From sequence record OR513085.1: a DNA stretch of 64,000 bases. One strand, 5' to 3'. Made by a program: the position numbers and the translations under genes. Of the stretch, positions 1,843 through 61,626 are shown piece after piece (within the stretch, counting starts at the first letter, position 1; every line of letters begins with the position of its first letter). Under the pieces are notes generated by a model that had not been told where the DNA came from, ran no database searches, and saw only the letters and a program-made list of their open reading frames with translations.

Positions 1843-2217
1843 ATGAACAAACCAGTATATCCAAAATTTGTAGTACTAAATGATGGCCAAGAGACTATAA
1901 TTGTGGCAGGAATGTGTACGTATCACAGAGAACTGTTTAACGAAAAGCACTTCAATTGCATAGGCGGAGGATGGTTCAAATGGGATCGTCAAGCCGGAAT
2001 TTTTCAGATGTATAGTAACTCAGATCAGTTTGGTTATGCAGATATACGAATTGTTGAGGATTGCATAGCAGAAGGTAAAGTTTATACTTCATCAAGGAAA
2101 CACCGAAAACTTGATCTTTCGCAAATGTCAAGAATTACTTTTACTTCAGCATTAGTTCCTGATTTGAACTATACTAACTTGGACATTCCTGAAGTTTTGG
2201 CATACACAACTAACTAA
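1843..2217 (+). CDS. hypothetical protein
   Basis: 124-aa ORF directly after promoter. Confidence 0.7.
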   Translation: MNKPVYPKFVVLNDGQETIIVAGMCTYHRELFNEKHFNCIGGGWFKWDRQAGIFQMYSNSDQFGYADIRIVEDCIAEGKVYTSSRKHRKLDLSQMSRITFTSALVPDLNYTNLDIPEVLAYTTN

Positions 2218-5703: not shown

Positions 5704-5738
5704 AAAATGCCATTTTAGACGTCTAAAATGGCATTTTT
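5704..5738 (+). terminator. intrinsic terminator
   Basis: perfect palindrome AAAATGCCATTTTAG-acgt-CTAAAATGGCATTTT. Confidence 0.8.
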
Positions 5739-5895: not shown

Positions 5896-6096
5896 ATGAC
5901 AACAATATTAACAACCACAGAAATTTACGCTATCTACGCTATTACCGTAGCAATATTTTTACTCACTGACTATGTAACAATTGGTAAGTCTGGAGCTTTA
6001 AGAAAAGCAATGACTATTACAAGAAGACTTGCAGGAGCTGCATTCATTGCAGTATTGCTGCTACAAATTATCCAATACTACTTACAGTCTAAATAA
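5896..6096 (+). CDS. small 2-TM membrane protein
   Basis: two hydrophobic helices. Confidence 0.6.
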   Translation: MTTILTTTEIYAIYAITVAIFLLTDYVTIGKSGALRKAMTITRRLAGAAFIAVLLLQIIQYYLQSK

Positions 6097-6104
6097 CAAT
6101 TGAC

Positions 6105-6323
6105 ATGACAAAATTAATGAATGCTTTAGCAAAGCTAGCTTCTCTAGGACATCCGTTCTATTACAGAATTGCGGTTACTCCGCAAAGCATTGAACTAAAA
6201 GTTTCTTATTGCCACAAAGGTTCTACACAACCTGCAGAAGACAACTACGTAGTTTCAAACACTGAAGCAACTAGAGAACGCCTAACTAAAGCAGTTACCA
6301 AAATAGTTAACTCACACAAATAA
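6105..6323 (+). CDS. hypothetical protein
   Basis: 72-aa ORF. Confidence 0.6.
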   Translation: MTKLMNALAKLASLGHPFYYRIAVTPQSIELKVSYCHKGSTQPAEDNYVVSNTEATRERLTKAVTKIVNSHK

Positions 6324-6335
6324 AAATAATGCATC

Positions 6336-8093
6336 ATGGGACGATACAATTTTAACATAACTGGCGATTACCTTGAAAACTTTATGAAAGACTGCTTTAA
6401 GTCAGGTTCTTTCAAAACATTCTACGAACTATGCCAAGACAACGGGTTTGACGAAGCTACTACAAAACATTGCTTTACTTTAGCATTTACTATGCAAGGT
6501 GAAAGCCGTGAAGATACTTTGTCGATCGACATTAACGTAGAACAACCAGAAGACTATGCAGAAATACTTTGGACCGGCTTAAAATCTTCAATACCTTTGG
6601 AATATTCAGACTTTAAGCATGAACTTGCATGGTACAGATTATTTGAATCTGACGAATCTTTGGATTTGTATTTCAGAAGACATCCTGCAGCTTTAGGAAA
6701 TATTTGCAGACTAGTACAATATGTTTCACGTGAAACAATAGTAAGCTTACTACGTGATAAGTTCTTTGCAGAGGAAGGTTACGAAGTTACTACGTTAGCT
6801 AAAGAAATTATGGCTGACAGATCATACGGAGTTAACGGGGTAATTGCTCAGGACGGTAAATTCTTAGCATGCGGATTCCAAGATCACATCAATATGCTAC
6901 CAGTAGCCAAGTCACTAGGATTAGTTGAAACTGACGATATAATGGCCGGCAGAGAATCTAATGCTATTCATATTTCCAGCAATAGCTACTCAGGTGGTGC
7001 TTCACATTACTTTAGCTCACCAGAATATTACGACTACTATGATGATCGTAAAATTAGCAATGAACAAATTGAAACTGTTTGGAATTCTGTAGACGAACTA
7101 AACCGATTTTATTTGAACAATTCTGGCTTAGTTACTGTAGGCGATTCATGTATGAAACTTTATGCAGGCAATGCTAACAGTGGTGCTAAATTTGGCAACT
7201 TAGAGTTCCTAAAGAATATTGTTAAGTTGGAAGAACGTTTCGACATTAAATTGCCTAGCTATGCTAACGTACTAACTGATGAACTAACTAATGCAGAAGC
7301 TATGATTGTTAGAACGTCACCAAAGAAAAGTATGCCAGGATTGTTAGAATCTATTGTAGTTATAGAACCTACGTTGAACAAAATTGGCAAAGCATGTGAA
7401 CAAATTGAAGCAGACTTTGAAAAGCATAATACTAGCGGACGTAACAAAATTCACTTCATGTTCCAGGAATTTATTGAAGGTGTTAATGGTGTGGCACATA
7501 TTGACTACTACCAAGCTATGGAAACTGGTGATTACAGACACCAAGGAGTAAATTTTAGATATGCTGCCTCAGAAAAACAAGGAGACATAGTAAACGGTGT
7601 TAAAAGTTCAACTGCAATATCATACGAAAATGCAGTAAAGCTTGAAAAGTTTATGAAGTTAATGGCTACCAGAATGTTTGCTAAAATTCAGGTAGAGTTT
7701 GTTGAGGACTTAAGTGGCCAACTTTATGTTCTACAAATAAGAACTTTCCTTAGCGAAAAAGTTACTAATGCTAGCAAAGAGCTATATGATAGCTATGCTA
7801 TACATGGCAAAACATTCTGCCAAGGTAACGCATACAAAGATGAACAAGTAATTTCGGTTAATGATGTACTTGTAGTAGATTCAGAGGCAACTTCCGAACA
7901 ACTTAAAGGCAAAAAATGTTTAATTGTCCTGGAAGATACTGACTTCTCGCATATCCTAGCATTGTCATATAATTTCAACATTCCGGCAATCTTTGCTATA
8001 CAAGAAAAGGACATATTCAAGAAAAAACTAAGTCAAAATAAGTACATAGTAGTTAATACTAGGTACCAAGAAGGCCTTATAAATTTTGTCTAA
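6336..8093 (+). CDS. PPDK/PEP-synthase-type ATP-grasp plus phospho-His swivel protein with unknown N-terminal domain
   Basis: GAKFGNLEFL (GGKxxNL), IVRTSPKKSMPGLLES (VRS..SMPG), FMFQEFIEGVNGVA, IQVEFV..GQLYVLQIRT, swivel SHILALSYNFNIPAIF (His539); no TIM barrel. Confidence 0.8.
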   Translation: MGRYNFNITGDYLENFMKDCFKSGSFKTFYELCQDNGFDEATTKHCFTLAFTMQGESREDTLSIDINVEQPEDYAEILWTGLKSSIPLEYSDFKHELAWYRLFESDESLDLYFRRHPAALGNICRLVQYVSRETIVSLLRDKFFAEEGYEVTTLAKEIMADRSYGVNGVIAQDGKFLACGFQDHINMLPVAKSLGLVETDDIMAGRESNAIHISSNSYSGGASHYFSSPEYYDYYDDRKISNEQIETVWNSVDELNRFYLNNSGLVTVGDSCMKLYAGNANSGAKFGNLEFLKNIVKLEERFDIKLPSYANVLTDELTNAEAMIVRTSPKKSMPGLLESIVVIEPTLNKIGKACEQIEADFEKHNTSGRNKIHFMFQEFIEGVNGVAHIDYYQAMETGDYRHQGVNFRYAASEKQGDIVNGVKSSTAISYENAVKLEKFMKLMATRMFAKIQVEFVEDLSGQLYVLQIRTFLSEKVTNASKELYDSYAIHGKTFCQGNAYKDEQVISVNDVLVVDSEATSEQLKGKKCLIVLEDTDFSHILALSYNFNIPAIFAIQEKDIFKKKLSQNKYIVVNTRYQEGLINFV

Positions 8094-8119
8094 TATTTAA
8101 CCTTTAATCAAAAAAGATC

Positions 8120-8590
8120 ATGAAATTAATTAAATCAAATAATGCCCTGCATGCACAAATAGAATCTCACGAAGAGTTATGCTACATGGAGGTACTGTTA
8201 CAGGTCGTATTCCGCGACATTTGCAAAGCATGCATAGAATCCGGTGAACCTCCATATAGGTACAATCACCTACTAGGAATGCTAAAAGGCCCGGCAAAAG
8301 CTACGTTTAGCCTGGCATGTATGTCTGCAGGAGTTGCTAAAATGTCAGAGTACACTGCACAAAAATTTACAACTGATCCGCTACTAAGCATGCAAAAATC
8401 CATGGATTCGTATATGTCTACACTTACAAAAACATTCATTAGACATGGTGAAGCATGCATTAGTATAGACTCAGGAGGCATACAATTCGGCCTTGAGGAA
8501 GCTGAAGTACTGGAAGAACTTAGTGCATTTCCAGGCTACACACTACAACTCGACAAATTTAGAGACTCGACATATTTCTGGACAGTATAA
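8120..8590 (+). CDS. hypothetical protein
   Basis: 156-aa ORF. Confidence 0.65.
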   Translation: MKLIKSNNALHAQIESHEELCYMEVLLQVVFRDICKACIESGEPPYRYNHLLGMLKGPAKATFSLACMSAGVAKMSEYTAQKFTTDPLLSMQKSMDSYMSTLTKTFIRHGEACISIDSGGIQFGLEEAEVLEELSAFPGYTLQLDKFRDSTYFWTV

Positions 8591-8603
8591 AAATTTAAAA
8601 CAC

Positions 8604-9305
8604 ATGACAAATAAAAAACACCAAGTAGTATATTTCAAAACTACTACAGGACGCTATGGAATTCATGCAGGCTTCCTAGTATTCAACAAAGAACAAATTA
8701 TCAAAACTATTAAAGACGACAGCTACTCTGGTAGTATACGTTACGGAATTGCAGACGGTAAAACTCAGTCTGGCCTACTTTCACAAATGCCAATAGAATT
8801 GTTTGAGTCGGAATTTCCTGACCACTTAAAGCTGTTTACAGCCAAACAAATTACTGCCAAGTTTTCAAAAGCTATTAGCGAAAAGTACGGAGAACATAAA
8901 ATAAAGGCCGCAATAAAAACGCTTAAGCCTTCTGAACTAAAACCAGGCTTCATTTATCAAGACAAAGACGGCCATAATGAAGTTTTCCTTGGCAAAGCTA
9001 CATGGACCGAAAGTCATACTAAAGCAAACAAAGCTAATGTAGAAAAAGAAGGTTATGCTTTTATGCGAATGTGGCAAATTACTCAAGGTACTGAAGACAC
9101 TAATGCAGAAAATGAACGTATGACCAGATGGGTAGATGTTCTTAAAACTAAACGCAAATACGTTAAGGAAGTCGGCAGGTTTGTTATGAAAAATATAAAG
9201 TCTGAGTATTCATATTATCGTGATGAACGTGGCTATATGTACCATGACCGTGATAAAATTGTCAATACTACTACATGGACACTAAAATTGCATGACTTTA
9301 CCTAG
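8604..9305 (+). CDS. hypothetical protein
   Basis: ATG at 8604 after A-rich leader; the track start at 8493 overlaps the upstream gene. Confidence 0.65.
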   Translation: MTNKKHQVVYFKTTTGRYGIHAGFLVFNKEQIIKTIKDDSYSGSIRYGIADGKTQSGLLSQMPIELFESEFPDHLKLFTAKQITAKFSKAISEKYGEHKIKAAIKTLKPSELKPGFIYQDKDGHNEVFLGKATWTESHTKANKANVEKEGYAFMRMWQITQGTEDTNAENERMTRWVDVLKTKRKYVKEVGRFVMKNIKSEYSYYRDERGYMYHDRDKIVNTTTWTLKLHDFT

Positions 9306-9343
9306 CTATTTTGTATTATAAAAACTAACAACAATACCTACAC

Positions 9344-10333
9344 ATGCACAAAATTGTTTACTTAGACACAGAAACTTCAGGATTGCCGCAAAGGCATGGC
9401 ACTCTTGAACAACAACCATACATACATTCCTGCTCAGTTATCAAAGAACATTTTGACGAACGTACAGGCGAACACTTAGAAGTTGAAAAATACGAAGTTT
9501 ATGACAGAGATACTGTTGACTTAGTTAATGAAGCTACCGTAAAAATCAACGGCATTACTAAGGAGTACTTGCTTGAGCACGGAATTCCTAGCGACGAAAT
9601 GTACGCAAAGATTAAGCGCTCTTTGGCTGATGCCGAGGTTATAGTATGTCACAACACTAAATTCGACTTACAATTACTTTGGTACACTGCTTTAAGACGT
9701 AGAGATAACGAGCTTATCATGAAAATTCTAACTACAAAAACATTCTGTACGTCAGCATACTCAAGACATTATAGCATTTCTGACAAAAAGCCATACCAAA
9801 TGAACCTTAGACATTTACATGATAAATTGTTTGGCTATGTTTTTGATGGCGCACATAATGCTTTAGCTGATACTATTGCTTTGCGTGATTGTACGCATGA
9901 ATTGCTTAAGCGTGGTGAAATTTCAGCAAAACATTTAACTTCGCCTACGTACTTTAGTTACGTAACTTTTGCAGAAGTTGGCGATGACGAATGGAAGCTG
10001 CAAATTTCAAACATTTGTCCTAAAACGTTTTATCCAATGACAACTCAGGAATCGTCGTCATTCAAGCTGTCTGAACTTACTAAAGCATTCAATGACTTTA
10101 CTATGGCATCATCTGTTATGTTTTTCCGAACTAAGGAAGACATTCAAAAAATTCAGACTGCATGCATTGAAAACTCAGGCTTCTGTACAACTTTAGGATT
10201 TAAGCTTATGACTTACTTAAACCGTGAGGATATTCTGGATAGTCGTGAACTTGCAGAATATCACAAGTCAATTGACAAAAAATTCATAAATCCTTTTGTA
10301 CTTTTCTCGGATAACAATAACAAATACGACTAG
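9344..10333 (+). CDS. DEDDh 3'-5' exonuclease (DnaQ-like) with C-terminal extension
   Basis: ExoI YLDTETSG, ExoII CHNTKFD, ExoIII AHNALADT. Confidence 0.9.
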   Translation: MHKIVYLDTETSGLPQRHGTLEQQPYIHSCSVIKEHFDERTGEHLEVEKYEVYDRDTVDLVNEATVKINGITKEYLLEHGIPSDEMYAKIKRSLADAEVIVCHNTKFDLQLLWYTALRRRDNELIMKILTTKTFCTSAYSRHYSISDKKPYQMNLRHLHDKLFGYVFDGAHNALADTIALRDCTHELLKRGEISAKHLTSPTYFSYVTFAEVGDDEWKLQISNICPKTFYPMTTQESSSFKLSELTKAFNDFTMASSVMFFRTKEDIQKIQTACIENSGFCTTLGFKLMTYLNREDILDSRELAEYHKSIDKKFINPFVLFSDNNNKYD

Positions 10334-10397: not shown

Positions 10398-10429
10398 AAG
10401 CCTGGACATTTAAAATGTCCAGGCTTTTT
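10398..10429 (+). terminator. intrinsic terminator
   Basis: AAGCCTGGACATT...AATGTCCAGGCTT plus T-run. Confidence 0.75.
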
Positions 10430-25313: not shown

Positions 25314-26801
25314 ATGATTTTAGACGTTATCTACAATAATGTAGTAAACTCACAACTTGTGATAAGCTATGTTAATGACAAAGGCGGAGTAGACTTGAAA
25401 CATTACACAGTTTCAGATCAACCGAACCAATTTACAAAGTGGGTTTATAGCCACAATCCTACGGAAGTTATGCAAGGAGTAGTTTCGTTTGATGGAAAAC
25501 CAGTAAAACTTGACTTTGCTTCGAGATACAACAGGTTCGACTTTATGCAATTTGTTAACGGACTTCCTGAAGCAGAACGTGAAATGTTACTAGGCTTTAA
25601 GCCGATTGCTTGGTACTTTTTCGATATCGAAACGGAAATTCAGGATGAGTTCCCGGATGCAGAAAATGCAAAGACTCCAATTGTTTCTATATGCGTAACT
25701 GCAATGGATTCTAAACTTACTTCAATCGTTTTGACAACTGACCCATTACATAAAGAAACTGCAGAGGAAGCTACAAAAATCACAGTCGACTATATCCAAA
25801 CTAACTACGACAAAAACCAAGAAGTTGATGTTAGATTTGTTTATTGTGCATCTGAATATGAGTTGATTAAGATTTTCCTACAAATATACAAGAAAATCCC
25901 AGCATTATCAGGATGGAACATTGGTCCTGGTGAACGTGCGTATGACTGGCCTTACATTCTAAACAGAATGAAAAAGTTAGGATTGTCAATGACTGAAGCT
26001 TCAATTGACGGAACGTTAGACAGACATGGCTTACCAAACCACAAGCTTAATGTTGACTACATGGAACTTTTCAAAAAGTACGACTTCTCACTTAAACCTT
26101 ATGAATCTTACAGATTAGACTGGGTAGCTGGCAAGTCTTTGAAACTTCCAAAATTACCATATGACGGAACTTTAAAGCAATTGAGGGAAAACGACTTAGC
26201 AAGATTCTTGGCATATAATGCGATCGACACTATAATACTGGCGCTACTTCACAGAAAGCATAACTTAGTGTCGGTATTGAATGGGCTTTCATTAGTAACA
26301 TCACTGCCAATGCGAGATTGTATGGGGCCAGTGAACCAATCAGAAGCAGTATTGTTCAAATATTACTTTAAGCAAAAAGGTCCTAACGGAGAAATTGTAG
26401 TTTGCCCGCAACGTGAAAACCGACCTACAAAATACAAATACGACGGCGGTTATGTAAAAGACCCTGCAAGACAAATTGCAAAATACGTAATTTGTTTGGA
26501 CTTTTCATCACTATACCCATCATTGTATCGTACAATGAATCAAGGGCCTACGAATATATTGTTTGACGGTAGAACATTAACGCCATCTGAAATTGCACAG
26601 TATTCAAGCAATCCTGACTACATTATTTCTGCACAAGGCAGACTTTATGATAACCGAAAACCTTCGGCATACAAAGAAGTTCAGTCGGAATTGTACGTAA
26701 AGCGTAAAGAATATCAAGGCGACCAGTTCTTTTACTTGAACCAAATTCACTTCCCTGTTCAGCAAGAGGAAAAACGTAGAGGCTTAGTAGACTCAATTTA
26801 G
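25314..26801 (+). CDS. polB: family B DNA polymerase, N-terminal half (exonuclease plus motif A), gp43A-like
   Basis: FFDIETE, GWN..DWPY, YNAIDT, YDGGYVKDP, LDFSSLYPS; ends after the first fingers helix. Confidence 0.92.
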   Translation: MILDVIYNNVVNSQLVISYVNDKGGVDLKHYTVSDQPNQFTKWVYSHNPTEVMQGVVSFDGKPVKLDFASRYNRFDFMQFVNGLPEAEREMLLGFKPIAWYFFDIETEIQDEFPDAENAKTPIVSICVTAMDSKLTSIVLTTDPLHKETAEEATKITVDYIQTNYDKNQEVDVRFVYCASEYELIKIFLQIYKKIPALSGWNIGPGERAYDWPYILNRMKKLGLSMTEASIDGTLDRHGLPNHKLNVDYMELFKKYDFSLKPYESYRLDWVAGKSLKLPKLPYDGTLKQLRENDLARFLAYNAIDTIILALLHRKHNLVSVLNGLSLVTSLPMRDCMGPVNQSEAVLFKYYFKQKGPNGEIVVCPQRENRPTKYKYDGGYVKDPARQIAKYVICLDFSSLYPSLYRTMNQGPTNILFDGRTLTPSEIAQYSSNPDYIISAQGRLYDNRKPSAYKEVQSELYVKRKEYQGDQFFYLNQIHFPVQQEEKRRGLVDSI

Positions 26802-26812
26802 ATAAACATAGC

Positions 26813-26841
26813 AAAGAAGCCTAACAAAATTAGGCTTCTTT
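26813..26841 (+). terminator. intrinsic terminator
   Basis: AAAGAAGCCTAA..TTAGGCTTCTTT. Confidence 0.75.
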
Positions 26842-26870
26842 GTATACTAACAACAATAACACACAATAAA

Positions 26871-27980
26871 ATGACAAACTTACAAATTGCAACTATCGAA
26901 AGTACAACTAACAGATTATTTACGTACTACTGCGATAACGCTCAGAATGCTAAAGCTTTACAAATTAACAGGGATGCTTTAGAAATTTTCAGACAGACTA
27001 TAGGAGTTCCAGGATTCCTACATGTACAGCTACTAGCAGCTATTGCAGCTAACGACGTTTTGACTGAAATTATGCCTAACATAAATGTTACTGGCGTTAT
27101 TACAGAACATGAACACCGACTAAAAGATATTATTGTTGAATCTGCAAAAGCATTAGGAGTTTCATTTTCTGAAGCAACCAAATCATTTGTTGACCTTGGT
27201 TCAGATCATGCAAGAGTTATCGAACTTGCCAAAGAATCTTTGCTTGCTCCAGAAAATGTAGAAGGCTTTGTAATGGAAAGAATTGCAGCTAACAAAACTA
27301 TCGACGCTGAGGATGTTATACAAGCTTTAGGCGACATTGGACAAGGCGCAGCTAAAGTTGTAGAAGCGGTAACTAAAGTCGTGACTGCAGGAACTTATGG
27401 GCAAATTAGTGATAATGGCGAAAACAATGAATCAAAAAAAGTCCTGGAAATGGTTGAATGCCGTGATGGCCGAGTAGTTTTGACTGACGGTAAGGATGTT
27501 TTCCTTTACTCAGCATATGACGAAAATGGCGATCCTATGCCAGATGCCAAAATTGACTTGGAAACTCCGTCAACGGAAATTACTTATGCTGACTTGCTAG
27601 AATTTAGAAATGAAACTGAATTGGCTGATACTAAAATAGCTGCAGAAGAAACAATAACCGAATTAAGCGATGTAGTCGCAGATACTCTTGTTAATATTGC
27701 CAACCAGGAAGTTTCGGAGGAATTAGTTTCTAGGGAGGCCGAAGTTAAAGTAGAAATTGGCGTGCCTATTGAAGTACAGGAACAGGCATTTAACTTGGCT
27801 ACTAACAAGCTAGAAAACTATACAATTGCCAAAGGTAAGAAAGCGGCGCTTAAGGTGTATTTAGAAAGCCAGGACCTTGGGTATGTTTTGGAAGACATTG
27901 AGGCCGGGGAACCTTTAGAGTTTGAAAAAGAAATTATCGAGGCTTTAAAAGAGTTCTTAACTTTAGAACAGCCTAAATAA
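26871..27980 (+). CDS. acidic hypothetical protein between PolB halves
   Basis: 369-aa ORF, E-rich C-terminus. Confidence 0.7.
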   Translation: MTNLQIATIESTTNRLFTYYCDNAQNAKALQINRDALEIFRQTIGVPGFLHVQLLAAIAANDVLTEIMPNINVTGVITEHEHRLKDIIVESAKALGVSFSEATKSFVDLGSDHARVIELAKESLLAPENVEGFVMERIAANKTIDAEDVIQALGDIGQGAAKVVEAVTKVVTAGTYGQISDNGENNESKKVLEMVECRDGRVVLTDGKDVFLYSAYDENGDPMPDAKIDLETPSTEITYADLLEFRNETELADTKIAAEETITELSDVVADTLVNIANQEVSEELVSREAEVKVEIGVPIEVQEQAFNLATNKLENYTIAKGKKAALKVYLESQDLGYVLEDIEAGEPLEFEKEIIEALKEFLTLEQPK

Positions 27981-27989
27981 ATAAAAATC

Positions 27990-28018
27990 ACAAATGCCTA
28001 GCTTTGTTAGGCATTTGT
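27990..28018 (+). terminator. terminator-like hairpin
   Basis: ACAAATGCCTAG..TTAGGCATTTGT. Confidence 0.65.
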
Positions 28019-28065
28019 GTATTATAACATTACAATACAACATAATAAATACACACGACAAAATC

Positions 28066-28938
28066 ATGAGCAATGTAACAACAAAAATTAAGTATGACGC
28101 ACAAGTAACGTTGAAAAACGTAGATGTAAGAGCTTTCCAAAGAATCCTGGAACCTGCTTTACTTTTTGGCGATCAAATTACTTTTAACATTAACCTTGAA
28201 TCTGGGGAGATTTACGGATTTTCAGGAGGTTCTGACAAATTTAAATTCTGGAATGCTCCACTAACTCAAATCTGCGAAAAGGTAGAATTTGGCGATGGCT
28301 ACACAGAAACACTTCCAGTAAAAACTGTTATCATGCAGACAAGGGCATTACTTAACGTAATGAACATTGTAGGCGCTAACATTGATGTTGAGATCAACCT
28401 TAAAAAGCATACGTTAGTTTATGAAGCAAAAGGCCTAACGTTACGTAAGGACAGACTAACATTAGAATATGCATGCGGATTACTTTCAGTAGGTCAACCA
28501 GATATCACTGACGAAAAGAAAGCTGAAAGACTTGGCTCTTACGGTGAAACTCATGAATTTGAAATGCCAGTACAAGTTCTTGGCAGAATCAAACAATTGT
28601 CGAATATCCAAACTTTGGAAAAGAAAATCGACAATATCACGTTTACTTCGCAGGATGGATTCCTTAGAATTTGCAATGATGTATTCGATGACGTTTTTGA
28701 AAGTATATACGTTGGTGAAATGCCAGAATACAAATTCAAAACTGAAGTATTCGGATTGATTGACAATGATAACTACAATGTTACAATCACAAGAAATCCA
28801 AGAGGTATCAAAAAAATTATGTTCTTCTCAAAAGACAGAGACATCAAATTCGTATCTTCGTTACTTGCAAAAGTTGATGACGTCGAGGATTCTGGAGATA
28901 TTTCAAATGAATTTGCTGCTTTCGCTAACGGGCACTAA
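28066..28938 (+). CDS. probable sliding clamp (gp45/PCNA-like)
   Basis: 290 aa, repeated helix/beta pattern (FQRILEPALLFGDQITFNI; FEMPVQVLGRIKQL), located inside the PolB locus. Confidence 0.55.
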   Translation: MSNVTTKIKYDAQVTLKNVDVRAFQRILEPALLFGDQITFNINLESGEIYGFSGGSDKFKFWNAPLTQICEKVEFGDGYTETLPVKTVIMQTRALLNVMNIVGANIDVEINLKKHTLVYEAKGLTLRKDRLTLEYACGLLSVGQPDITDEKKAERLGSYGETHEFEMPVQVLGRIKQLSNIQTLEKKIDNITFTSQDGFLRICNDVFDDVFESIYVGEMPEYKFKTEVFGLIDNDNYNVTITRNPRGIKKIMFFSKDRDIKFVSSLLAKVDDVEDSGDISNEFAAFANGH

Positions 28939-28958
28939 CATACAATACATTATATTTA

Positions 28959-28989
28959 GCTCGGATAGTTATGCTATCCGAGCATTTTT
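28959..28989 (+). terminator. hairpin: terminator or IS605-type left-end hairpin
   Basis: GCTCGGATAG-ttatg-CTATCCGAGC immediately upstream of tnpB. Confidence 0.55.
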
Positions 28990-29005
28990 AAAAATTAACA
29001 ACTAA

Positions 29006-30172
29006 ATGAAAACAATAAAAGCTTACAAATACCGAATTTATCCTAACGCTACTCAAAAGGTAGTGCTTGATAAGTCGTTTGGCTGTGCACGTTTTTATTG
29101 GAATACTTTAGTTGCCGAATTAAATTCATATTCAAACGAGCATACTCCAGTATACAAAAGCGCTTCGCAAATACGTAGCGAATTTACTTGGATGCAAGAA
29201 GTGTCATGCTCAATGCTACAACAAAGGCGTATAGACTTTGATAGAGTACGTAACCAGTATTTTAACAAAAATCGCAAAACTAAATTGGGTAGAATTAAAT
29301 TCAAACGCAAAAATGAAAACCAATCATTTAGAATGAACAATCAAAATTTTGCGTTGCTTGACAATAAACTCAAAGTTACTAAATTAGGCTATATTAAAAT
29401 AAGCATTGACCGCAGGCCTCCTGAAAATGCTAAATACTTATCGGTTACTATTAGCAAAAATAATCTTAACGAGTACTATGCATCAGTATGCTTTGAATAT
29501 GAACATGAACCAAAAATAAAACAAACTACAAAAAATGTAGGCTGCGATTTAGGTATAGCATCATTGCTTACTTTATCGGACGGCTTACAATTTGCAAATC
29601 CTAAAATATTCAGAGAAAACCAATCTGAGTTAAGAAGATTGCAACAACATTTATCTAAAAAGCGTAAAGGAAGTTCTAGACATAACAAATGCAGAATTAA
29701 AGTCGCAAAGCTTTATAAAAAGATGACTAGGCAACGTGAATGGCTACTACATAATATTTCAAAATATGTAGTAACTAATTACAATGAAATTGCTTTAGAA
29801 GATTTGTCTATATCGTCTATGCGTAAACGTTATAGAATGAATAAGCAATTTAGACGTGCTTTGGAGGACGCTTCAATGACCAAATTAAAAAATTATATTT
29901 GGTACAAGCAGCAAGAATATGGTATACATGCACGTTTCATTCCACGTTATACAGCGTCATCTAAAGAATGCTATGAATGTGAGAACGTACAAAAAATTGC
30001 AATGCGAGAACGTGAATTTATTTGCACGTCATGCGGTACTGTACGTGACCGAGACTTAAACGCTGCTTTAGTAATACAAAGAAAAGCACTAGGTAGAATC
30101 AGCCCTAGTATACAAACATTGAGTGATATTAAGTCGTTACATCCACTTGTGGTTATAACGCAATTACAATGA
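29006..30172 (+). mobile_element. tnpB: IS200/IS605-family TnpB RNA-guided endonuclease, no TnpA in window
   Basis: HTH KAYKYRIYPN..Q..FGCARFYWN; RuvC-I GCDLG, RuvC-II ALEDL, CxxC..CxxC Zn ribbon, RuvC-III DRDLNAA. Confidence 0.93.
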
Positions 30173-30259
30173 AATGTTAAGACTTAAACAAGAGTCATGA
30201 TTATATGGACACGGATTTATACCTCCATTTTTATACTTTATAAAAAATAAAACAATTAA

Positions 30260-31537
30260 ATGAAATTACAAAATCACATTATTAACGAAGAAGGCAATAT
30301 TATTTTTGATGGTAAGTGGGATATGTCTAAACTTGAAACGTATACGCCAGAGGAATTACAAATTATTAAGGATGATGCGTTAGTTTGGTCAATTCTAAAT
30401 GGTTCGATGTCAGTTTCACAAAAAACTATGATGAACTCAATTTATGGCGCAACAGCTAATGAGTGGTATTATTTCGCATCCATAGAAGCTGCTGATGACG
30501 TTACTGCTGAGGGTAGGTATTACATTAAGTTGTCGGAACAGATAATTATGGATTATATGAAAAATGTTTGGCACTTAGATAAAGAATTGCATAAACATTT
30601 AAAAGAACATCCAGAACTTAAAGCTTCTTTCAAAGACCCGGATTGGCGAGCTGAAGTTAAGCAAATAGATGTTAATTTGGATTACGTACTTTATATGGAC
30701 ACTGACTCGATGTACGTTACGTTTGAGGAATTATTTGAAACTATTGGCTATGACCCGCAACATGACGGTTCATATGCCAGGTTTATTATGGAAATGAATT
30801 CGTTCAGACTACGTGGATTGTTTAAGGAAAAAATTGGTGAACGTGTAGCCGAAAGACATGGTGAAAACTTTTTAGTTTTCGATTTGGAATCGGTATCTGA
30901 AACTACATGTTTCCTGGCAAAGAAAAAATATGTGATGTCGTACAAAATGGAAGACGAAAAAATTTATGACGACCCACTTAAACATATAAAAGGTAAAGGT
31001 GTTGAGCTAGTTCAGCAAAAATTAGCAGTGCCAATCAAAGACATGATTCGTTTCATGGTAGTTCAAATGTTCAAAGGTAAAATTACGAATGTTAACTACA
31101 AAACTTACATGAGGTATATGTTCCAGCAATTCTCGCAACTACCTTTCCAGCAAAGATGTACTTTAGGTTCAGCAAACACGTATGATAAATATGTGCTTAA
31201 CGATACTACAAGATGTGAATTTGCTTCTGGCGCAGGTGCAGATGTTAAAGGTATGGCATATTACAACTTTGATGTTAATGCAAAAGGACTTAAAACAAAA
31301 TATGAAGTTCTTAAAGGCGGTAAGTTAGTTTGGTATTATGCAAAACCTACGCAAGAGCATCCTGATAGATTTTCATACGCATTCCATGTTGACGAATATC
31401 CTGAGGAACTTGCTCCTGAAATGGACATCGAAACTCAATTTATGAAACTTGTAGCAGGACCTGTTGGTAGAATTGTAGCATGTGCCGGAATTGATGTAGG
31501 AAATCCTCTGGCATCTCAAATGATGATGGAATTATAA
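30260..31537 (+). CDS. polB: family B DNA polymerase, C-terminal half (motifs B and C), gp43B-like
   Basis: QKTMMNSIYG, VTAEGR, YMDTDS, KKKY, KGVE. Confidence 0.92.
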   Translation: MKLQNHIINEEGNIIFDGKWDMSKLETYTPEELQIIKDDALVWSILNGSMSVSQKTMMNSIYGATANEWYYFASIEAADDVTAEGRYYIKLSEQIIMDYMKNVWHLDKELHKHLKEHPELKASFKDPDWRAEVKQIDVNLDYVLYMDTDSMYVTFEELFETIGYDPQHDGSYARFIMEMNSFRLRGLFKEKIGERVAERHGENFLVFDLESVSETTCFLAKKKYVMSYKMEDEKIYDDPLKHIKGKGVELVQQKLAVPIKDMIRFMVVQMFKGKITNVNYKTYMRYMFQQFSQLPFQQRCTLGSANTYDKYVLNDTTRCEFASGAGADVKGMAYYNFDVNAKGLKTKYEVLKGGKLVWYYAKPTQEHPDRFSYAFHVDEYPEELAPEMDIETQFMKLVAGPVGRIVACAGIDVGNPLASQMMMEL

Positions 31538-55416: not shown

Positions 55417-56328
55417 ATGGCAAAAACATTTGAACTTATAAAAGACGGTAGTATAAAACATGCAGGCCGTACACTTTACAAAATAAAAGCTTTAGTAGAC
55501 ATTCCAAATCATGGCGTAAATGCCGGAGATATTGGTGGATGGGTAGAATCTGAAAATAACCTACAAAGCGATGAAGCATGGATTGGCGATGCAGCCATGG
55601 TTTATGGTGACGCTGTAGTTTCAGAAAAGGCTTTAGTTACTGAATTTGCACAAGTTTCAGGATTTGCTGAAATTAAAGGCTTTGCAAAAGTACAAGGTAA
55701 TGCCAAAATTTCAGACAAAGCCAGAATTTGGGGAAGCTGTACTGTTGAAGACAACGTTACGATAGGAGGCTTTACATTCATTGCAGACTTTGCAATAGTA
55801 CGAGGATTTGCTAAAATTGCAGGAGAAATTCAAATTATTGAAAACGCTAGAATTTGGGGTCATGTAAAAATTTATGCTAACGCTATAATTAGAGGTCATG
55901 CACAAATTTATGGTGATGCTGCCATTTATGGAGGCACTATTTCAGGTAATACGGTAGTTTGTGACTATGCAAAAATAGGTTCTCATGTTATGCTAAGCTA
56001 TGGAATTTTTAAAGGTAGGGCTGTAGTTACTACACCTAGTGACTACGCAGCAATTGCTAACATAGGCTCAAGGAATGGAACTACTATAGCATATAAAACT
56101 AACGTACTTGCTCAAAGACCATCACAAATTGAAATTATTTGCGGATGTTTCACAGGTGACTTACAACAATTCTACAATATTGTACGTAGACAATATGGCG
56201 GGCATAACGTAGGTATTGCGGGTAGACGTTACTACAAAGAATACATGGCAGCTATACAACTTATTGAAGCCAAATTCTCTGTGAAAGTAAAGCGTAAAGG
56301 TAGATTTTTGGCATGGTTAAGATCATGA
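55417..56328 (+). CDS. left-handed beta-helix (hexapeptide repeat) protein
   Basis: LYKIKAL..AGDIGGWVESENNL then repeats such as AMVYGD/AQVSGF/AKVQGN; C-terminal CGCFTG. Confidence 0.85.
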   Translation: MAKTFELIKDGSIKHAGRTLYKIKALVDIPNHGVNAGDIGGWVESENNLQSDEAWIGDAAMVYGDAVVSEKALVTEFAQVSGFAEIKGFAKVQGNAKISDKARIWGSCTVEDNVTIGGFTFIADFAIVRGFAKIAGEIQIIENARIWGHVKIYANAIIRGHAQIYGDAAIYGGTISGNTVVCDYAKIGSHVMLSYGIFKGRAVVTTPSDYAAIANIGSRNGTTIAYKTNVLAQRPSQIEIICGCFTGDLQQFYNIVRRQYGGHNVGIAGRRYYKEYMAAIQLIEAKFSVKVKRKGRFLAWLRS

Positions 56329-56415
56329 ACCTACTAATTGGAATTTTTGGTTTTAGAATTGAAATAACCAACTGCGAATACGAGAATTTTTCTAACGAAC
56401 AAAGACAAATCGACA

Positions 56416-57126
56416 ATGAATTATAACGACATATCAATACCAGTAGCTAATTTAAAGGCCGGTTGCTATGAAAATCACATAGGCAACAATATTTCGCCGA
56501 ACGCTACGATAGCTGTGCTACTTTACGTTCTTTACGATAACGAAGTTATAAACAAGCAATCATTACTTGACAGAACAAAAGTGTTACGTAACACACCTAA
56601 AGGGCTAGGCGAAATTAAAAACGATTCCGAATTGTACCATTACTACGAAACACATAAATGCCCAATTACTGGCGAGTGGTATAGTGACACTAGGAATCAT
56701 CACATTCTGAATGATGCTATTGACGAAAAAGTTGAATGGAATGTACTAAATAGCCTTAGGATTCCTTACGCAAAAATGGTTGAATTCCTTATGTTAATCT
56801 ACGGAGTTTCAAAAAGTAAGGCTAAGGATTTGTTCAATAAACTATACATTCTGGATGCTTTGGTTGATTTTAGATCACTAGGAAGCCATACAGTTGAATG
56901 GTACAAAAGTCTTGGCTTTATTGACATCGAACCTAAAGATTTTGAAATGCCTGACTACAAGCATAATTTCAAGTTTGCTTTTACTGGACCAGTTGATACT
57001 GATGATTTTGAAGCTAAATTTAACGATGAGAAACGTAAAGCCTACGCTAAGCTAGAACAACAAAAACGTTCGACATTAGGATTGCTAATGCAAACTCATG
57101 CAATTAACTTAAAAGCTACTTACTAA
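56416..57126 (+). CDS. hypothetical protein
   Basis: 236-aa ORF. Confidence 0.7.
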   Translation: MNYNDISIPVANLKAGCYENHIGNNISPNATIAVLLYVLYDNEVINKQSLLDRTKVLRNTPKGLGEIKNDSELYHYYETHKCPITGEWYSDTRNHHILNDAIDEKVEWNVLNSLRIPYAKMVEFLMLIYGVSKSKAKDLFNKLYILDALVDFRSLGSHTVEWYKSLGFIDIEPKDFEMPDYKHNFKFAFTGPVDTDDFEAKFNDEKRKAYAKLEQQKRSTLGLLMQTHAINLKATY

Positions 57127-57128
57127 AC

Positions 57129-57422
57129 ATGGAACTAGACATTTTACTTAGCAACATACTAGCCAACGCCAGCAAAACAGAACGTAACGCTTACGAAATG
57201 CTTAACGAAACTAACCAAACATTTAGCAACATAGGAACTTTCAAGCTGAAGAAATTTGACAAGCCATTCACAATAAAAGTTACTAAAGAACGTTGGTCAG
57301 GTAAGTTATGCTTTAGGAAGCAGGACAAAAACAAGTACAAAGGATTCACAGTTTCTACTGTACTTACAGACGATGAGCTATCAGAAATCTACGGAAAATA
57401 CTCAGACAACGATATAGCATAA
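57129..57422 (+). CDS. hypothetical protein
   Basis: 97-aa ORF. Confidence 0.6.
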   Translation: MELDILLSNILANASKTERNAYEMLNETNQTFSNIGTFKLKKFDKPFTIKVTKERWSGKLCFRKQDKNKYKGFTVSTVLTDDELSEIYGKYSDNDIA

Positions 57423-57455
57423 AAAATGCCAAGCATACTGTATGCTTGGCATTTT
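57422..57455. terminator. bidirectional terminator between convergent genes
   Basis: AAAAATGCCAAGCAT-ACTGT-ATGCTTGGCATTTT. Confidence 0.8.
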
Positions 57456-57466
57456 GTTTTCTCTTT

Positions 57467-57694
57467 TTATTTCTTTGCAGATTCAAGTTTTTCAAGCTGG
57501 TCAGCTTTTATTTTCTTGTCTCCTTTTAACTTCTCCATTATAGCTTTGTAAGTGATTGTTCCACCTACTGCAACAGTCGTCATTAGTGCAGTTGCTAAGT
57601 ATTCAATTTGTTCTGGGCTTAATCCTGAAATTATGTCTGAAATTGATTCGTTAGCAAAAGATTGCTTAGGTCCTTGTTTTCTAAATGTACTCAT
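57467..57694 (-). CDS. small putative virion/internal protein with ANES site
   Basis: MSTF...SFANES then hydrophobic segment; GTAAATAA late-like leader; convergent terminator. Confidence 0.6.
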   Translation of the reverse strand: MSTFRKQGPKQSFANESISDIISGLSPEQIEYLATALMTTVAVGGTITYKAIMEKLKGDKKIKADQLEKLESAKK

Positions 57695-57773
57695 TGTTGT
57701 AAGATGTTTATGTTGAATTATTTACACAACTTGCTAAAAGTTGTGAATGCTTCGCATATTAATGTAAAAGTTT

Positions 57774-57816
57774 TTGCAAAAATGTTTTACGATGTCAAAT
57801 AAAAGTTATATATTTG
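57774..57816 (+). promoter_or_regulatory. promoter, TTGC class
   Basis: TTGC...TTTTACGATGTC-N12-TATATTTG. Confidence 0.75.
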
Positions 57817-57837
57817 TATTATACAAAAACAAACAAT

Positions 57838-58110
57838 ATGAACCAAATAAGCAAAACTGCTTTGGCTATAACTTTCGCAGTACTACTTTTCTTTGGGCCG
57901 TTAGGTTACAAGATTTACAAAGGCAATTTTCAGCCTAAAGAAAACTTTACAATTGAGTTAACTTATATTGATGGCTACGTTGAAACTAAAACGTACAACC
58001 TAAACAAAGACTCTGAGTTCTACGTACAAACATCCAAAGGTAGCTATAGCCTGCAAACGCAATACGTTGTAGTAGCTCCTGGTGTTATACGTTACAAACT
58101 AATTAAGTAG
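57838..58110 (+). CDS. membrane-anchored hypothetical protein
   Basis: N-terminal hydrophobic helix from ATG 57838. Confidence 0.6.
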   Translation: MNQISKTALAITFAVLLFFGPLGYKIYKGNFQPKENFTIELTYIDGYVETKTYNLNKDSEFYVQTSKGSYSLQTQYVVVAPGVIRYKLIK

Positions 58111-58129
58111 GAAAAGTTTTTGAAAATAG

Positions 58130-58172
58130 TTGCAAAAACATTTTCATAAGTCAAAAACTTTTCTTATATTTG
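58130..58172 (+). promoter_or_regulatory. promoter, TTGC class
   Basis: TTGC...TTTTCATAAGTC-N12-TATATTTG. Confidence 0.8.
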
Positions 58173-58225
58173 TATTATACAAAATCAATAATTAACATTT
58201 ATTAATCAAACAAATTCAAAACAAA

Positions 58226-59509
58226 ATGACAACAAACGTACAAAACTTAGGAACTATTTTCGCAGATAAATTCAATGAAGTAATGGCTAACGAAGCTAAT
58301 GTAACAAAAGCTTACCAAGTCATAGCTAAATTTTGTATAAGCCAAGCTAACCAGGCAGATGAAGATGACTCAGAAACTATAGCTTTCTGGAATGAAAAAG
58401 AAACTTATTGTATGGACAAAGCTAAATCAGGAGTTGCTAAAGTTGCAACGACAATCGAACGCTTCCAAAAGAACACTTCAAACTTCAAAACTGAATTTAA
58501 GTTTTCAAGTAAGGAGGAAAGAACAATTTACCAAAGATTCGTAGAAAACAAGGAAAACACTACAAACAAGTTAATGTACTACACAGTAACTGATGAAAAC
58601 TTCAATTACAGAACTGAGTCTGGCATTTACTTCCACAACATGGTTAATGCAATTGTTGAGAGATTTAACGAAATTTCAAACTACGAATTTGCTATAGTTG
58701 ACAAGGAGTTCTTAGTTAACAACGAATTTGCTATTGATACTGAACTTGGTAGAAGATATGCATTCTATGTAGATACTGATGACTTCCATGCATCTACAAA
58801 AGAACAAGTAGCATCAGTTTATTCAAAAGTACATCCAGGATGCAGAGTATTCGTTTCTTACGAAGCATTAGCCGAACATATCTCAACTTACATCAGATAC
58901 AAAGCTATCTACATTCTAAGCGACCAGGCATTCAATGCTTTACGTTACTTAGTAGATTCAATTGAGGTAGTTAAATGCCCAAACCTTGATCTTTCAGAAT
59001 TTGGTGATGATAACTTGGTAAGCCATGACTTTCAGGCATACGCAGAATTCCTAAGCTTCAGAAAATTCAATACTGTACATTACACAAATTCAGAAGTTGT
59101 AGAAGTAGAAGTTGAACAAAAACAAGAGTTCTTCTCTGACTTTATCAGATTCAAATCTACAGGAAAGGCAGAGAAAAAGTCAGTAACAAAGGACATTACT
59201 TACGACCTAGTAACAATTTCTAAACCGGCATCAAAGGTACCAGTTTACCGATTTGCTAAAAGAATGAAGCAAAATCCAGGTACTAGACAAATCCTGATTC
59301 AAAACATCCTATTGACATTGAACGAAAACTTACAATTGGAAAACATTGAAGTTATGCCAGAAGATTTTACGTTAAGCAACAACAAAGATTACGTTATGCA
59401 TAGCCAACTTAACTCCATCATTACAATTGCTAACAGAGATGCAGACAAATTCCATGCAGGAACGTTAGAAGCATTAACAAACATTTTGCAAATACAAATT
59501 AGAAAGTAG
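58226..59509 (+). CDS. hypothetical protein
   Basis: 427-aa ORF after promoter. Confidence 0.75.
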   Translation: MTTNVQNLGTIFADKFNEVMANEANVTKAYQVIAKFCISQANQADEDDSETIAFWNEKETYCMDKAKSGVAKVATTIERFQKNTSNFKTEFKFSSKEERTIYQRFVENKENTTNKLMYYTVTDENFNYRTESGIYFHNMVNAIVERFNEISNYEFAIVDKEFLVNNEFAIDTELGRRYAFYVDTDDFHASTKEQVASVYSKVHPGCRVFVSYEALAEHISTYIRYKAIYILSDQAFNALRYLVDSIEVVKCPNLDLSEFGDDNLVSHDFQAYAEFLSFRKFNTVHYTNSEVVEVEVEQKQEFFSDFIRFKSTGKAEKKSVTKDITYDLVTISKPASKVPVYRFAKRMKQNPGTRQILIQNILLTLNENLQLENIEVMPEDFTLSNNKDYVMHSQLNSIITIANRDADKFHAGTLEALTNILQIQIRK

Positions 59510-59590
59510 GATAATTTTTCATAGACATATAATTTTTGCCTGGGTAGTCTTTAAGATTGCCCAGGATTTTTAAAACAAACTTAACAAACA

Positions 59591-60061
59591 ATGGAAACTA
59601 TAACAGTCATAACAAGCCCAGTTCACAGAAGTATTTATGAAGTCAACATAGGCGTAAATAGCTACGACATTACTTATGTACAACAAAGCGGAACGTCAAT
59701 ACATAGAAACAAAGCTACAAATGATTTGTTGGAACTAAATACTAACGATGAAGCTAAGCTAGAATTAGTTTGTGCGTACTTTAATGCCCTACGTAACTGG
59801 CAATTAGCATACATTAACGAAGACTATCTTACGTTTAACATTGGCAACTTATTAATTCCTGATACACTTAAGGAAAAGTTTATTGGCGAAGTACGTAAGC
59901 ATACGCTAACTTCAATGTTTGGTACATTACAACTTATGGATTCTATGAACATCAAAATTGAAGTTCCTCAATCAGAAGTTGTAGGCAGACCTTTGCTAAA
60001 ATATGCTAAAGCTATCAACCACTACCACAACTACTGCAAACAACAACTTAACAATGGATAA
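59591..60061 (+). CDS. hypothetical protein
   Basis: 156-aa ORF. Confidence 0.65.
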   Translation: METITVITSPVHRSIYEVNIGVNSYDITYVQQSGTSIHRNKATNDLLELNTNDEAKLELVCAYFNALRNWQLAYINEDYLTFNIGNLLIPDTLKEKFIGEVRKHTLTSMFGTLQLMDSMNIKIEVPQSEVVGRPLLKYAKAINHYHNYCKQQLNNG

Positions 60062-60659: not shown

Positions 60660-60717
60660 ATTTTTGTACTTTAATATAACTTAACAAAATAATTTAAATA
60701 CACAGATAAACACTACA

Positions 60718-61380: not shown

Positions 61381-61626
61381 TGTGGCCTATAAAAGAAAAC
61401 CTTAATTGCAAAAGTTAGGCATCATTTTGCACAAACCGATCATTATGATGCCGAACTTGCTAAGTTATGCCTAGCACATATTAAACCACTTTGGGATAAA
61501 GAGCTTTGGCAAGAATGTAAAGATGAAGTCTACAAATTTTATGAAGGCTTAGACATCTCGATAGAAAAGGACATGATCCTTGCAAACCTAAATAAACGAA
61601 TAAGATTAAAAACTACACATGACTAA
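61380..61626 (+). pseudogene. frameshifted gene missed by the ORF track
   Basis: TAATG-coupled ATG at 61380 stops after 12 codons; +1 frame open 61393-61626 and overlaps the next ATG. Confidence 0.65.

Follow-up and report, generated by a model that had tools for sequence, protein, structure and literature searches.

We have analyzed a stretch of DNA of 64,000 nucleotides (the window) that is 100% identical to part of the 218.5-kb record OR513085.1, from the jumbo phage MA9V-2 of Chryseobacterium, which infects C. indologenes MA9, with window positions equal to record positions minus 124000. Within it, positions 6336-8093 of the + strand are the coding sequence MA9V2_167 (WNN12416.1), which has an ATG start, encodes 585 amino acids and carries the product name "hypothetical protein" in the deposited record. 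A sequence-only reading of the same DNA had placed an open reading frame (ORF) at exactly these positions and described it as an orphan dikinase. Family profiles and a predicted structure confirm that the protein belongs to the dikinase superfamily of phosphoenolpyruvate (PEP) synthase (PEPS) and pyruvate phosphate dikinase (PPDK), with a resemblance well above chance. We think it probable that MA9V2_167 is an active, phage-specific, barrel-less dikinase of three modules that passes phosphate from His539 to its N-terminal module (N-module), and that a PHPT1-like partner protein resets or erases the phosphorylation. This reading is built upon homology, domain anatomy, the invariance of catalytic positions, the existence of fused and split forms, gene linkage, purifying selection and restriction to phages. 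Taken together, the dikinase and the PHPT1-like protein point to a phage system built on histidine (P-N) phosphorylation. The components are the following.

6336..8093 including the stop codon, + strand: MA9V2_167, barrel-less PEPS/PPDK-type dikinase-like protein, 585 amino acids (from the ORF, homology and an AlphaFold2 model)
6336..6773, + strand: N1 subdomain, residues 1-146, mostly helical with a beta-hairpin (from the secondary structure of the model and conservation)
6774..7121, + strand: N2 subdomain, residues 147-262, alpha/beta, proposed acceptor or second active site (from conservation and the model)
7122..7790, + strand: compact PPDK_N-type ATP-grasp, residues ~263-485 (from PF01326, hhalign, Foldseek and conservation)
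7791..8090, + strand: phosphohistidine swivel (PEP-utilizers mobile) domain, residues ~486-585 (from PF00391, alignment of the histidine and conservation)
1843..2217, + strand: MA9V2_156, PHPT1 (Janus/Ocnus, PF05005)-like protein, 124 amino acids (from PF05005 and co-occurrence)

A barrel-less relative of PEP synthase and PPDK

The single MA9V2_167 sequence has no match in Pfam, PHROGs, NCBIfam or PADLOC, nor among PDB sequences using phmmer. The family is invisible to standard annotation, and only family profiles detect the relationship. A first search gave 25 full-length relatives of metagenomic origin with 27-36% identity, and an exhaustive profile search enlarged the family to 232 representative clusters, 110 of them with E <= 1e-30. 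With a family of this size and a conserved partner gene, the label of orphan no longer applies. All conservation figures for the dikinase refer to an alignment of 84 family sequences, which have 20-37% identity to MA9V2_167 apart from the orthologue in phage MA9V-1 at 92%. The dN/dS ratio between the MA9V-1 and MA9V-2 genes is 0.072, and the gene is therefore under strong purifying selection.

Taken individually, 56 of the 84 family members match PF01326 (PPDK_N), with a best E value of 4.6e-7, and 15 match PF00391 (PEP-utilizers). When the family profile is compared with the PDB the top three matches are all PEP synthases (8a8e, 9dae and 2ols; E 0.011-0.31), the alignments spanning the last strands of the ATP-grasp through the swivel domain and placing F-S-H539 upon the catalytic T-S-H. 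The exhaustive search also reached three bridge proteins, P0152, P0165 and P0170 (library-wide E 3.5e-13 to 1.8e-8), which carry PPDK_N and PEP-utilizers domains at the curated threshold. Alignment of the 84-member profile with one of these, the mini-dikinase P0165, by hhalign gives a probability of 98.7% and E = 3.3e-16 over residues 322-585. The R-x-S-P, Q..E..V and Q-x-R blocks of the family are in register with both PEPS and P0165, and His539 is aligned with the catalytic histidine of the three PEP synthases and of P0165.

An AlphaFold2 model calculated from the family alignment has pLDDT 90.2 and pTM 0.87, and the predicted structure contains an ATP-grasp fold at high confidence. The sequence-only reading had named a prediction lacking this fold as grounds for its refutation, and that outcome did not occur. 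Using the whole-chain model in Foldseek against the PDB, the best matches are PPDK 1kbl (1e-6) and PEP synthase 2ols (2e-6), followed by the ATP-grasp domains of Ddl, PurK and biotin carboxylase. Within this domain G283, K285, R326, S328, G335, S339, Q377, G382, V386, Q452 and E454 are invariant in all 84 sequences, and Q467 (99%) and R469 (96%) are nearly so. From established knowledge of PPDK we infer that K285, R326, S328, Q377, Q452, E454, Q467 and R469 would act as nucleotide and metal ligands.

The codon of the catalytic His539 lies at 7950-7952, within the motif F537-S538-H539-x-L-A-L-S ... I549-P550, and the histidine is 100% conserved. The chain stops 46 residues beyond it. No TIM barrel (PEP-utilizers_C) is found by Pfam in MA9V2_167 or in its ten neighbours, and none is annotated across the window. 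In these respects the sequence-only reading is borne out, having described PPDK/PEPS nucleotide-binding motifs followed by a swivel domain with a conserved histidine and no C-terminal barrel. The strings that it quoted are present in the protein, S538-H539-ILALSYNFNIPAI at residues 538-552 and GVIAQDGKFLACGFQDH at residues 168-184. Thus the homology, the end of the chain after His539 and the lack of a barrel in the scanned neighbours confirm the dikinase observation. Given the missing PEP/pyruvate barrel, MA9V2_167 is not a PEPS or PPDK proper.

The N-terminal module and its split forms

The N-terminal region is new within the sensitivity of the searches made, as the sequence-only reading had held, but it is shorter than the ~280 residues given there. 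We place its end at residue ~262, with the ATP-grasp beginning at ~263 and the first invariant motif of that domain at G283/K285. The N1 subdomain has conserved F6, G10, G24 (100%) and G55. Part of the family has N2, ATP-grasp and swivel without N1, and such representatives begin at profile position ~137. The N2 subdomain has the fewest substitutions of any segment between MA9V-1 and MA9V-2. It contains a second invariant histidine, His184 (codon 6885-6887), present in 84 of the 84 fused forms and thus conserved to the same degree as His539. It is accompanied by G168 (93%; G or A in 100%), G174 (99%), C179 (83%), S/T214 (100%), S215 (80%), G220 (89%) and Y259 (96%). The G..DG.F..C...H motif to which attention had been drawn earlier is present, with conservation confined to G168, G174, C179 and H184.

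The sequence-only reading had suggested structure prediction and a fold search for this region. Modelled alone, residues 1-262 give a confident structure (pLDDT 88.1, pTM 0.85). It has no match in the PDB by Foldseek (best E 0.42, probability 0.05), in a search with N1 and N2 together, which may cost sensitivity. No recurrent Pfam match is found in the N-terminal third among the 84 family members, and a protein search for other architectures using region 1-262 returned the MA9V-1 orthologue only.

The module is also found as a separate protein. The closest Pfam-recognisable relatives of the family are the mini-dikinases P0152 and P0165, phage genes encoding 395 or 312 amino acids, and directly upstream of each lies an ORF of 367 or 415 amino acids that corresponds to the N-module. 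The two gene pairs are these.

L077:6917-9188: N-module ORF plus ATP-grasp/swivel mini-dikinase gene
L079:2359-4620: N-module ORF plus ATP-grasp/swivel mini-dikinase gene

In L077 the upstream ORF overlaps the start of the dikinase gene. The upstream ORFs are homologous to N1 plus N2, with E values of 1e-20 and 3.6e-10 using the family profile and hhalign probabilities of 98.6% for N1 and 93.7% for N2. Five further stand-alone N-module proteins were found in the exhaustive profile search, making seven in total. All seven retain G168, G174 and His184, and S/T214 and S215 are kept in all those that align there. The occurrence of the same two modules both fused and split shows that the N-module is a dedicated part of the dikinase with a function in it, and the simplest role to propose for it is that of acceptor site. 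The neighbourhood of the L077 pair contains genes for a PARP-domain protein, PNKP, NT5C and a nucleoside deoxyribosyltransferase.

The PHPT1-like partner and a proposed phosphoryl transfer

A gene-neighbourhood survey, proposed in the sequence-only reading, was carried out as an all-against-all comparison of the flanking ORFs from 26 loci. It reveals a single conserved neighbour, a PHPT1-like protein of 98-135 amino acids, which in MA9V-2 is MA9V2_156, 4.1 kb upstream of the dikinase gene. At the level of the locus, linkage was assessed in windows of +/-10 kb for 23 non-redundant loci to which the dikinase had led and whose flanks measure 5 kb or more. In 13 of the 23 the partner is encoded on the dikinase strand at a distance of no more than 10 kb, and in 10 it is ~1 kb or less downstream. 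It overlaps the dikinase stop codon in L005 and L032, and begins 2 to 5 nucleotides past the stop in L009 and L011. Translational coupling of the pair is frequent. A search of 50,697 cultured phage records yields the dikinase in three phages only, MA9V-1, MA9V-2 and pT24 of Tenacibaculum, and the partner in these three alone, regardless of the clade used as query. For the most part co-occurrence was measured in windows of +/-10 kb, and the scans are limited by the patterns used. The partner gene too is under constraint, with a dN/dS of 0.13 between MA9V-1 and MA9V-2.

The link of the partner to PHPT1 is one of Pfam-level statistics. MA9V2_156 scores 24.0 bits against PF05005 (cutoff 23; E 4.2e-5), and 65 of 95 partner relatives match the family at E <= 0.01 (best 7.3e-7), with precomputed PF05005 annotation in 8. 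When a partner sub-profile is compared with the PDB, human PHPT1 structures are all three of the top matches (E 0.25-0.32). Across the profiles of the partner family such structures are among the best PDB matches (E 0.25-1.1), with alignments that cover the invariant G-G-G ... S-x-x-x-G block. The conserved residues are K8, H28, G42, G43, S60, F63 and G64. His28 lies N-terminal of the G-G-G block and is invariant in 51 of 51 members, linked and solitary. The likeness to PHPT1/Janus-Ocnus proteins includes a score above the family cutoff, a similar size (~100-125 amino acids) and an invariant histidine preceding G-G-G. MA9V2_156 differs in being phage-encoded and very divergent, and in having ~9-11 fewer residues between the histidine and G-G-G in Pfam coordinates. 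The pattern of D-G..G....H followed by S..G is similar in N2 and in the partner, and we considered whether they might be paralogues. This was rejected, as hhalign gives a probability of ~1%, with E values of 0.04-0.19 and 0.11 using shallow and deep profiles.

To our knowledge PF05005 is otherwise known from eukaryotic PHPT1, and the family is generally treated as eukaryotic. PHPT1/Janus-Ocnus-like proteins also form a large family in uncultured phages (loci L017 and L040-L075). Clustering at 90% identity leaves at least 241 groups, and a scan of viral sequences centred on the partner, with a 15-member alignment as query, gave a sample of 36 loci from IMG/VR. These are mostly solitary, with K8, H28, G-G-G and S..F-G conserved, and no conserved neighbour is found for the solitary genes in the 36 viral loci. 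The dikinase-linked partners fall mostly into sub-clusters of their own. Thus the PHPT1-like proteins are a broad phage family in which particular branches are tied to the dikinase. In the L017 phage the solitary gene adjoins that for DNA polymerase III alpha, and the same locus contains a T4-type portal gene carrying an intein (L017:5755-9300; PF14890 between two Portal_T4 segments).

A mechanism can be drawn from the homology to PPDK, PEPS and RPH (PMC4844700, PMC5371819), in which we infer that the protein is catalytic, which way the phosphate travels, what His184 does, what the partner acts upon and what serves as acceptor. The ATP-grasp (residues ~263-485) would bind ATP, and His539 of the swivel would attack the beta-phosphate to become (pyro)phosphorylated with release of AMP, the gamma-phosphate being lost to water or phosphate. 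The swivel would then carry the remaining phosphoryl group to the site around His184 in the N-module, together with G168, G174 and S214-S215. There it could be transferred to His184 itself in a histidine-to-histidine relay, or to another acceptor with His184 serving as a catalytic residue. Finally MA9V2_156 would hydrolyze the phospho-nitrogen species, whether phospho-enzyme or N-phosphorylated product, as a reset or an eraser. PHPT1 hydrolyzes phosphohistidine, including that of bacterial CheA~P, and phospholysine (PMC11277029, PMC4389004), and the partner most likely hydrolyzes a P-N phosphate of the dikinase system. PHPT1 is reported to act through a general-base histidine without a phospho-enzyme intermediate, and this disfavours the partner as a component of the relay relative to a hydrolase (PMC11277029).

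A more specific version of this mechanism is a writer/eraser pair, in which phosphate passes from His539 to His184 and then to a host or phage target from which it is removed by the PHPT1-type phosphatase. We offer this tentatively and regard it as doubtful. If true, no earlier description of a phosphohistidine signalling or relay system in a virus would exist, and in many other phages the solitary PHPT1-like proteins would then serve to erase host phosphohistidine signalling.

A number of observations weigh against a dikinase that phosphorylates its N-module and is served by the partner. No partner is found within 10 kb in 10 of the 23 loci, one of which (L014) is that of pT24, where the partner is encoded far away in the genome. 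It is absent from both of the split-form loci. In the partner-centred scan none of the 36 viral loci has a dikinase within 10 kb, and PHPT1-like proteins thus also work without one. The link between the two may therefore be looser than that of an obligate pair. The match of the partner to solved PHPT1 structures (2ai6, 2hw4 and 2nmm) is not significant alone (E 0.25-1.1). Equivalence of His28 with PHPT1 His53 is suggested by spacing only, because the local alignments to 2ai6 begin after His28. Lastly, the proposed acceptor role of the N-module is drawn from architecture and conservation alone, as the module has no recognisable relative.

The same observations can be read in other ways. The system could be a kinase forming small-molecule phosphoramidates, with the N-module binding an amine or amide metabolite whose nitrogen is phosphorylated by His539~P, and the PHPT1-like protein processing or removing the P-N linkage. 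Formation of N-P bonds has evolved independently in PEPS/PPDK-type kinases (PMC6482885; PMC6429109), the partner comes from a family of P-N bond phosphatases (from the PF05005 evidence; PMC4389004), and the conserved, pocket-like glycine, serine and histidine residues of N2 would suit a small ligand. We nevertheless consider this unlikely. No biosynthetic neighbours are conserved with the pair, and a hydrolase that merely reversed formation of the product would leave no obvious pathway. Moreover the N-module matches no PDB chain, RPH included, although whether structures of the TalE/Cj1418 type are present in the PDB was left unchecked.

Alternatively the target could be a protein, as for VadK of M. 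tuberculosis, with the N-module docking a host or phage protein that is phosphorylated by His539~P, possibly through His184. The partner would then reverse the mark, or strip host phosphohistidine proteins of two-component systems, the phosphotransferase system or phosphorelay-based defence. A barrel-stripped PPDK is known to autophosphorylate, bind target enzymes and have an operonic partner (PMC13400623), and bacterial CheA is among the proteins on which PHPT1 acts (PMC11277029). Part of the family has a variable N1 or none at all, as might be expected of a target-docking domain, and the occurrence of PHPT1-like proteins alone in many phages with no conserved neighbour would fit action upon host proteins. 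Against this, no target is known and the sequences show no identifiable protein-binding surface, while the invariance of N2 across very different phages favours a universal ligand over a host-specific protein. On balance we find a protein target improbable.

A third possibility is that autophosphorylation from ATP, or another NTP or dNTP (nucleoside or deoxynucleoside triphosphate), is coupled to hydrolysis of the phospho-enzyme by the PHPT1-like protein, so that NTP is converted to NMP (the monophosphate) and two phosphates and the nucleotide pools are reshaped. Such a two-step cycle fits the translational coupling of the genes, variants of RPH keep ATP pyrophosphatase activity without phosphorylating substrate (PMC4844700), and the gene lies among those of DNA and nucleotide metabolism (NAD ligase, exonuclease, RNR, NT5C and PNKP). 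It would however leave unexplained both the conserved N-module with its invariant histidine, found also as a separate protein, and the many loci that lack the partner, and simpler phage NTP pyrophosphatases exist as a matter of general knowledge. We think a pyrophosphatase very unlikely.

Genomic context and comparison with known dikinases

MA9V2_167 is one of a series of early/middle-type genes on the + strand, with the gene for an NAD-dependent ligase to one side of it and that for a DEDDh exonuclease to the other. Two hairpins may bracket its transcription unit.

5704..5737, + strand: hairpin resembling a terminator, beyond the GNAT gene; the upstream limit of the unit may lie here (consensus scan)
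10398..10426, + strand: hairpin resembling a terminator, beyond the DEDDh exonuclease gene; the downstream limit of a unit 5896-10333 may lie here (consensus scan)

The number of terminator-like sites found in the region by the consensus scan is not above that in shuffled sequences. Nor is the result of a promoter scan, for which the sigma-70 consensus is of doubtful relevance in a Bacteroidota host.

Every homolog context that can be annotated is phage-like, with genes for RNR, DNA polymerases, ligases, RNA polymerase and terminase, and most of the viral loci come from contigs of jumbo phages, 110-434 kb in length. When 185,579 species-representative genomes were scanned with a pattern there was one match, on a 2.3-kb contig of a metagenome-assembled genome. 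The dikinase family is thus found almost only in phage contigs. The hosts of the three cultured carriers (MA9V-1, MA9V-2 and pT24) are Flavobacteriia.

The sequence-only reading had raised a possible role in counter-defence or DNA modification, and on such a view the enzyme would phosphorylate a signalling nucleotide, a sugar or DNA. The gene is found in an accessory region of small hypothetical genes, homologs of Gad2 occur downstream of the dikinase in L007 and L019, and Tet_JBP and a weak HMUDK_hel match are present on two homolog contigs. None of these neighbours is conserved, however. A DNA-modification domain is present on only 2 of the 9 Pfam-annotated dikinase loci (L003 and L005), at a distance of 4-8.5 kb, and no PADLOC or anti-defence family matches the dikinase, the partner or their relatives. 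With the PHPT1-like protein as the sole conserved neighbour in the 26 loci and a negative result from PADLOC, the proposed link is not sustained, and we would allow it only the slightest chance of being correct. This and the pyrophosphatase are the least supported of the alternatives, here because there is no conserved context, and for the pyrophosphatase because the conserved N-module is unexplained.

Some features of individual loci may be recorded. In two metagenomic phages that are related to each other, a gene for a Gad2 (PF26128, anti-Gabija) homolog follows the dikinase at a distance of 1.3-1.7 kb (L007:13050-13934 and L019:18414-19319), and Gad2 is not conserved near the dikinase in other loci. 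The same two loci have a GerE-type regulator upstream of the dikinase, at 0.1 kb in L019 and 5.1 kb in L007. A gene for myo-inositol-1-phosphate synthase lies 1.8 kb downstream of the dikinase/partner pair at L005:11903-13090 (also in L006). The weak match to the helical domain of 5-hydroxymethyluracil DNA kinase (HMUDK_hel) is 4 kb downstream at L005:14263-15450, and the Tet_JBP gene is 8.5 kb upstream of the dikinase at L003:1449-2345. Such genes are suggestive of modified DNA or an unusual metabolism in certain of the phages; none is consistently linked.

Immediately downstream of the dikinase in the window, MA9V2_168 (156 amino acids) and MA9V2_169 (233 amino acids; phrog_2475, a family of unknown function), at 8120-9305, match nothing in Pfam, and conservation of the two extends to MA9V-1 only. 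That phage carries an additional gene of 279 nucleotides between their counterparts. Antisense ORFs at 7259-7447, 7344-7544 and 7793-8020 on the - strand recur in homologous loci and are apparent shadows of the + frame. Two apparent neighbour clusters of 15 loci each were rejected, since they are antisense shadow ORFs inside the dikinase gene. Elsewhere in the window (25314-31537) a family-B DNA polymerase is present as two coding sequences, MA9V2_192 (25314-26801) and MA9V2_196 (30260-31537), separated by two hypothetical genes and one for a TnpB-family RNA-guided endonuclease (29006-30172). The polymerase may have been split by a mobile element. A cluster of envelope/sugar-nucleotide type at 55417-63693 contains genes for an LpxD-like acyltransferase (55417-56328), DHFR (60054-60659), a KpsF/GutQ sugar-phosphate isomerase (60718-61380) and GlmU (61933-63693).

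We found no paper in the literature on this dikinase family or on its pairing with a PHPT1-like gene, and the MA9V-2 paper is silent on the gene. We rate the novelty as a familiar catalytic engine joined to a new putative acceptor module, restricted to phages, with a linked phosphatase family not previously tied to phages in the literature searched. A large PHPT1/Janus-Ocnus-like family in phages is revealed in addition. If the pair handles phosphohistidine or other P-N phosphates, this would be chemistry between virus and host that is barely explored because P-N bonds are labile. At the least, a usable annotation is provided for MA9V2_167, MA9V2_156, their relatives in pT24 and many metagenomic jumbo phages.

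The phage protein can be compared with a number of known dikinases. It shares with PEPS and PPDK (2ols, 8a8e and 1kbl) a PPDK_N-type ATP-grasp directly preceding the swivel, with the nucleotide-binding blocks and the histidine in register. It differs in having no C-terminal TIM barrel, a compact ATP-grasp (~220 residues) and an additional N-terminal module of 262 residues, and the similarity is so low that the MA9V-2 protein fails every Pfam model. The closest predicted viral structures, in a library that was searched with the whole chain only, are Gp139 of Bacillus phage G (G3MBK5; Foldseek E 3.3e-10, TM 0.56 on the target) and a 'PEP utilizing enzyme' of Vibrio phage VP-1. At 365 amino acids Gp139 is too short to contain a complete N-module, and neither protein is among the sequence relatives found in cultured phages. 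As predicted structures they are evidence that other large phages, too, have dikinase-like proteins without a barrel.

Rifampin phosphotransferase (RPH), to which the sequence-only reading likened the architecture, comprises ATP-grasp, rifampin (RIF)-binding domain and swivel, and its acceptor domain has no structural homologues (PMC4844700). The phage protein likewise combines an ATP-grasp, a C-terminal histidine swivel and what would be a non-barrel acceptor domain, and the expected reaction is ATP to AMP, inorganic phosphate and phospho-acceptor. The order is different, being ATP-grasp, substrate domain, swivel in RPH and N-module, ATP-grasp, swivel in the phage protein (PMC4844700), so that the comparison of architecture does not hold in this respect. 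The phage family also has the PHPT1-like partner. No RPH structure matched the N-module, which has no significant match in the PDB at all (best E 0.42). In the two-component dikinase HpeHI the ATP-grasp is HpeI, and HpeH contains the swivel and substrate domain (PMC12167813). The distribution of modules between two adjacent genes resembles that of the split phage forms, but in the latter the division is between the N-module and an ATP-grasp and swivel that are kept together.

TalE phosphorylates a dipeptide and Cj1418 L-glutamine, and these are N-P bond-forming kinases of the PEPS/PPDK type (PMC6482885). Compared by description, they provide examples of transfer to nitrogen within the superfamily that match the P-N specificity of the partner's family; they are encoded in biosynthetic clusters, in contrast to the phage gene, around which no biosynthetic neighbour is conserved. 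VadK (Rv1127c) of M. tuberculosis is a truncated PPDK with ATP-binding and histidine domains only, which autophosphorylates on the swivel histidine, works by way of protein partners and shares its operon with a partner gene (PMC13400623). Like the phage protein it is a barrel-less ATP-grasp plus swivel, but it is cellular rather than viral, lacks an N-module and has no reported PHPT1-like partner. RPH (an antibiotic kinase), HpeHI (an aromatic kinase), TalE and Cj1418 (which form N-P bonds) and VadK (a regulatory histidine kinase) represent an emerging class of barrel-less dikinases that use the PPDK swivel on new acceptors. To this class the family described here adds a phage-restricted branch of more than 200 sequence clusters, with a new putative acceptor module that has its own invariant histidine and a genetic link to a phosphohistidine-phosphatase-like protein.

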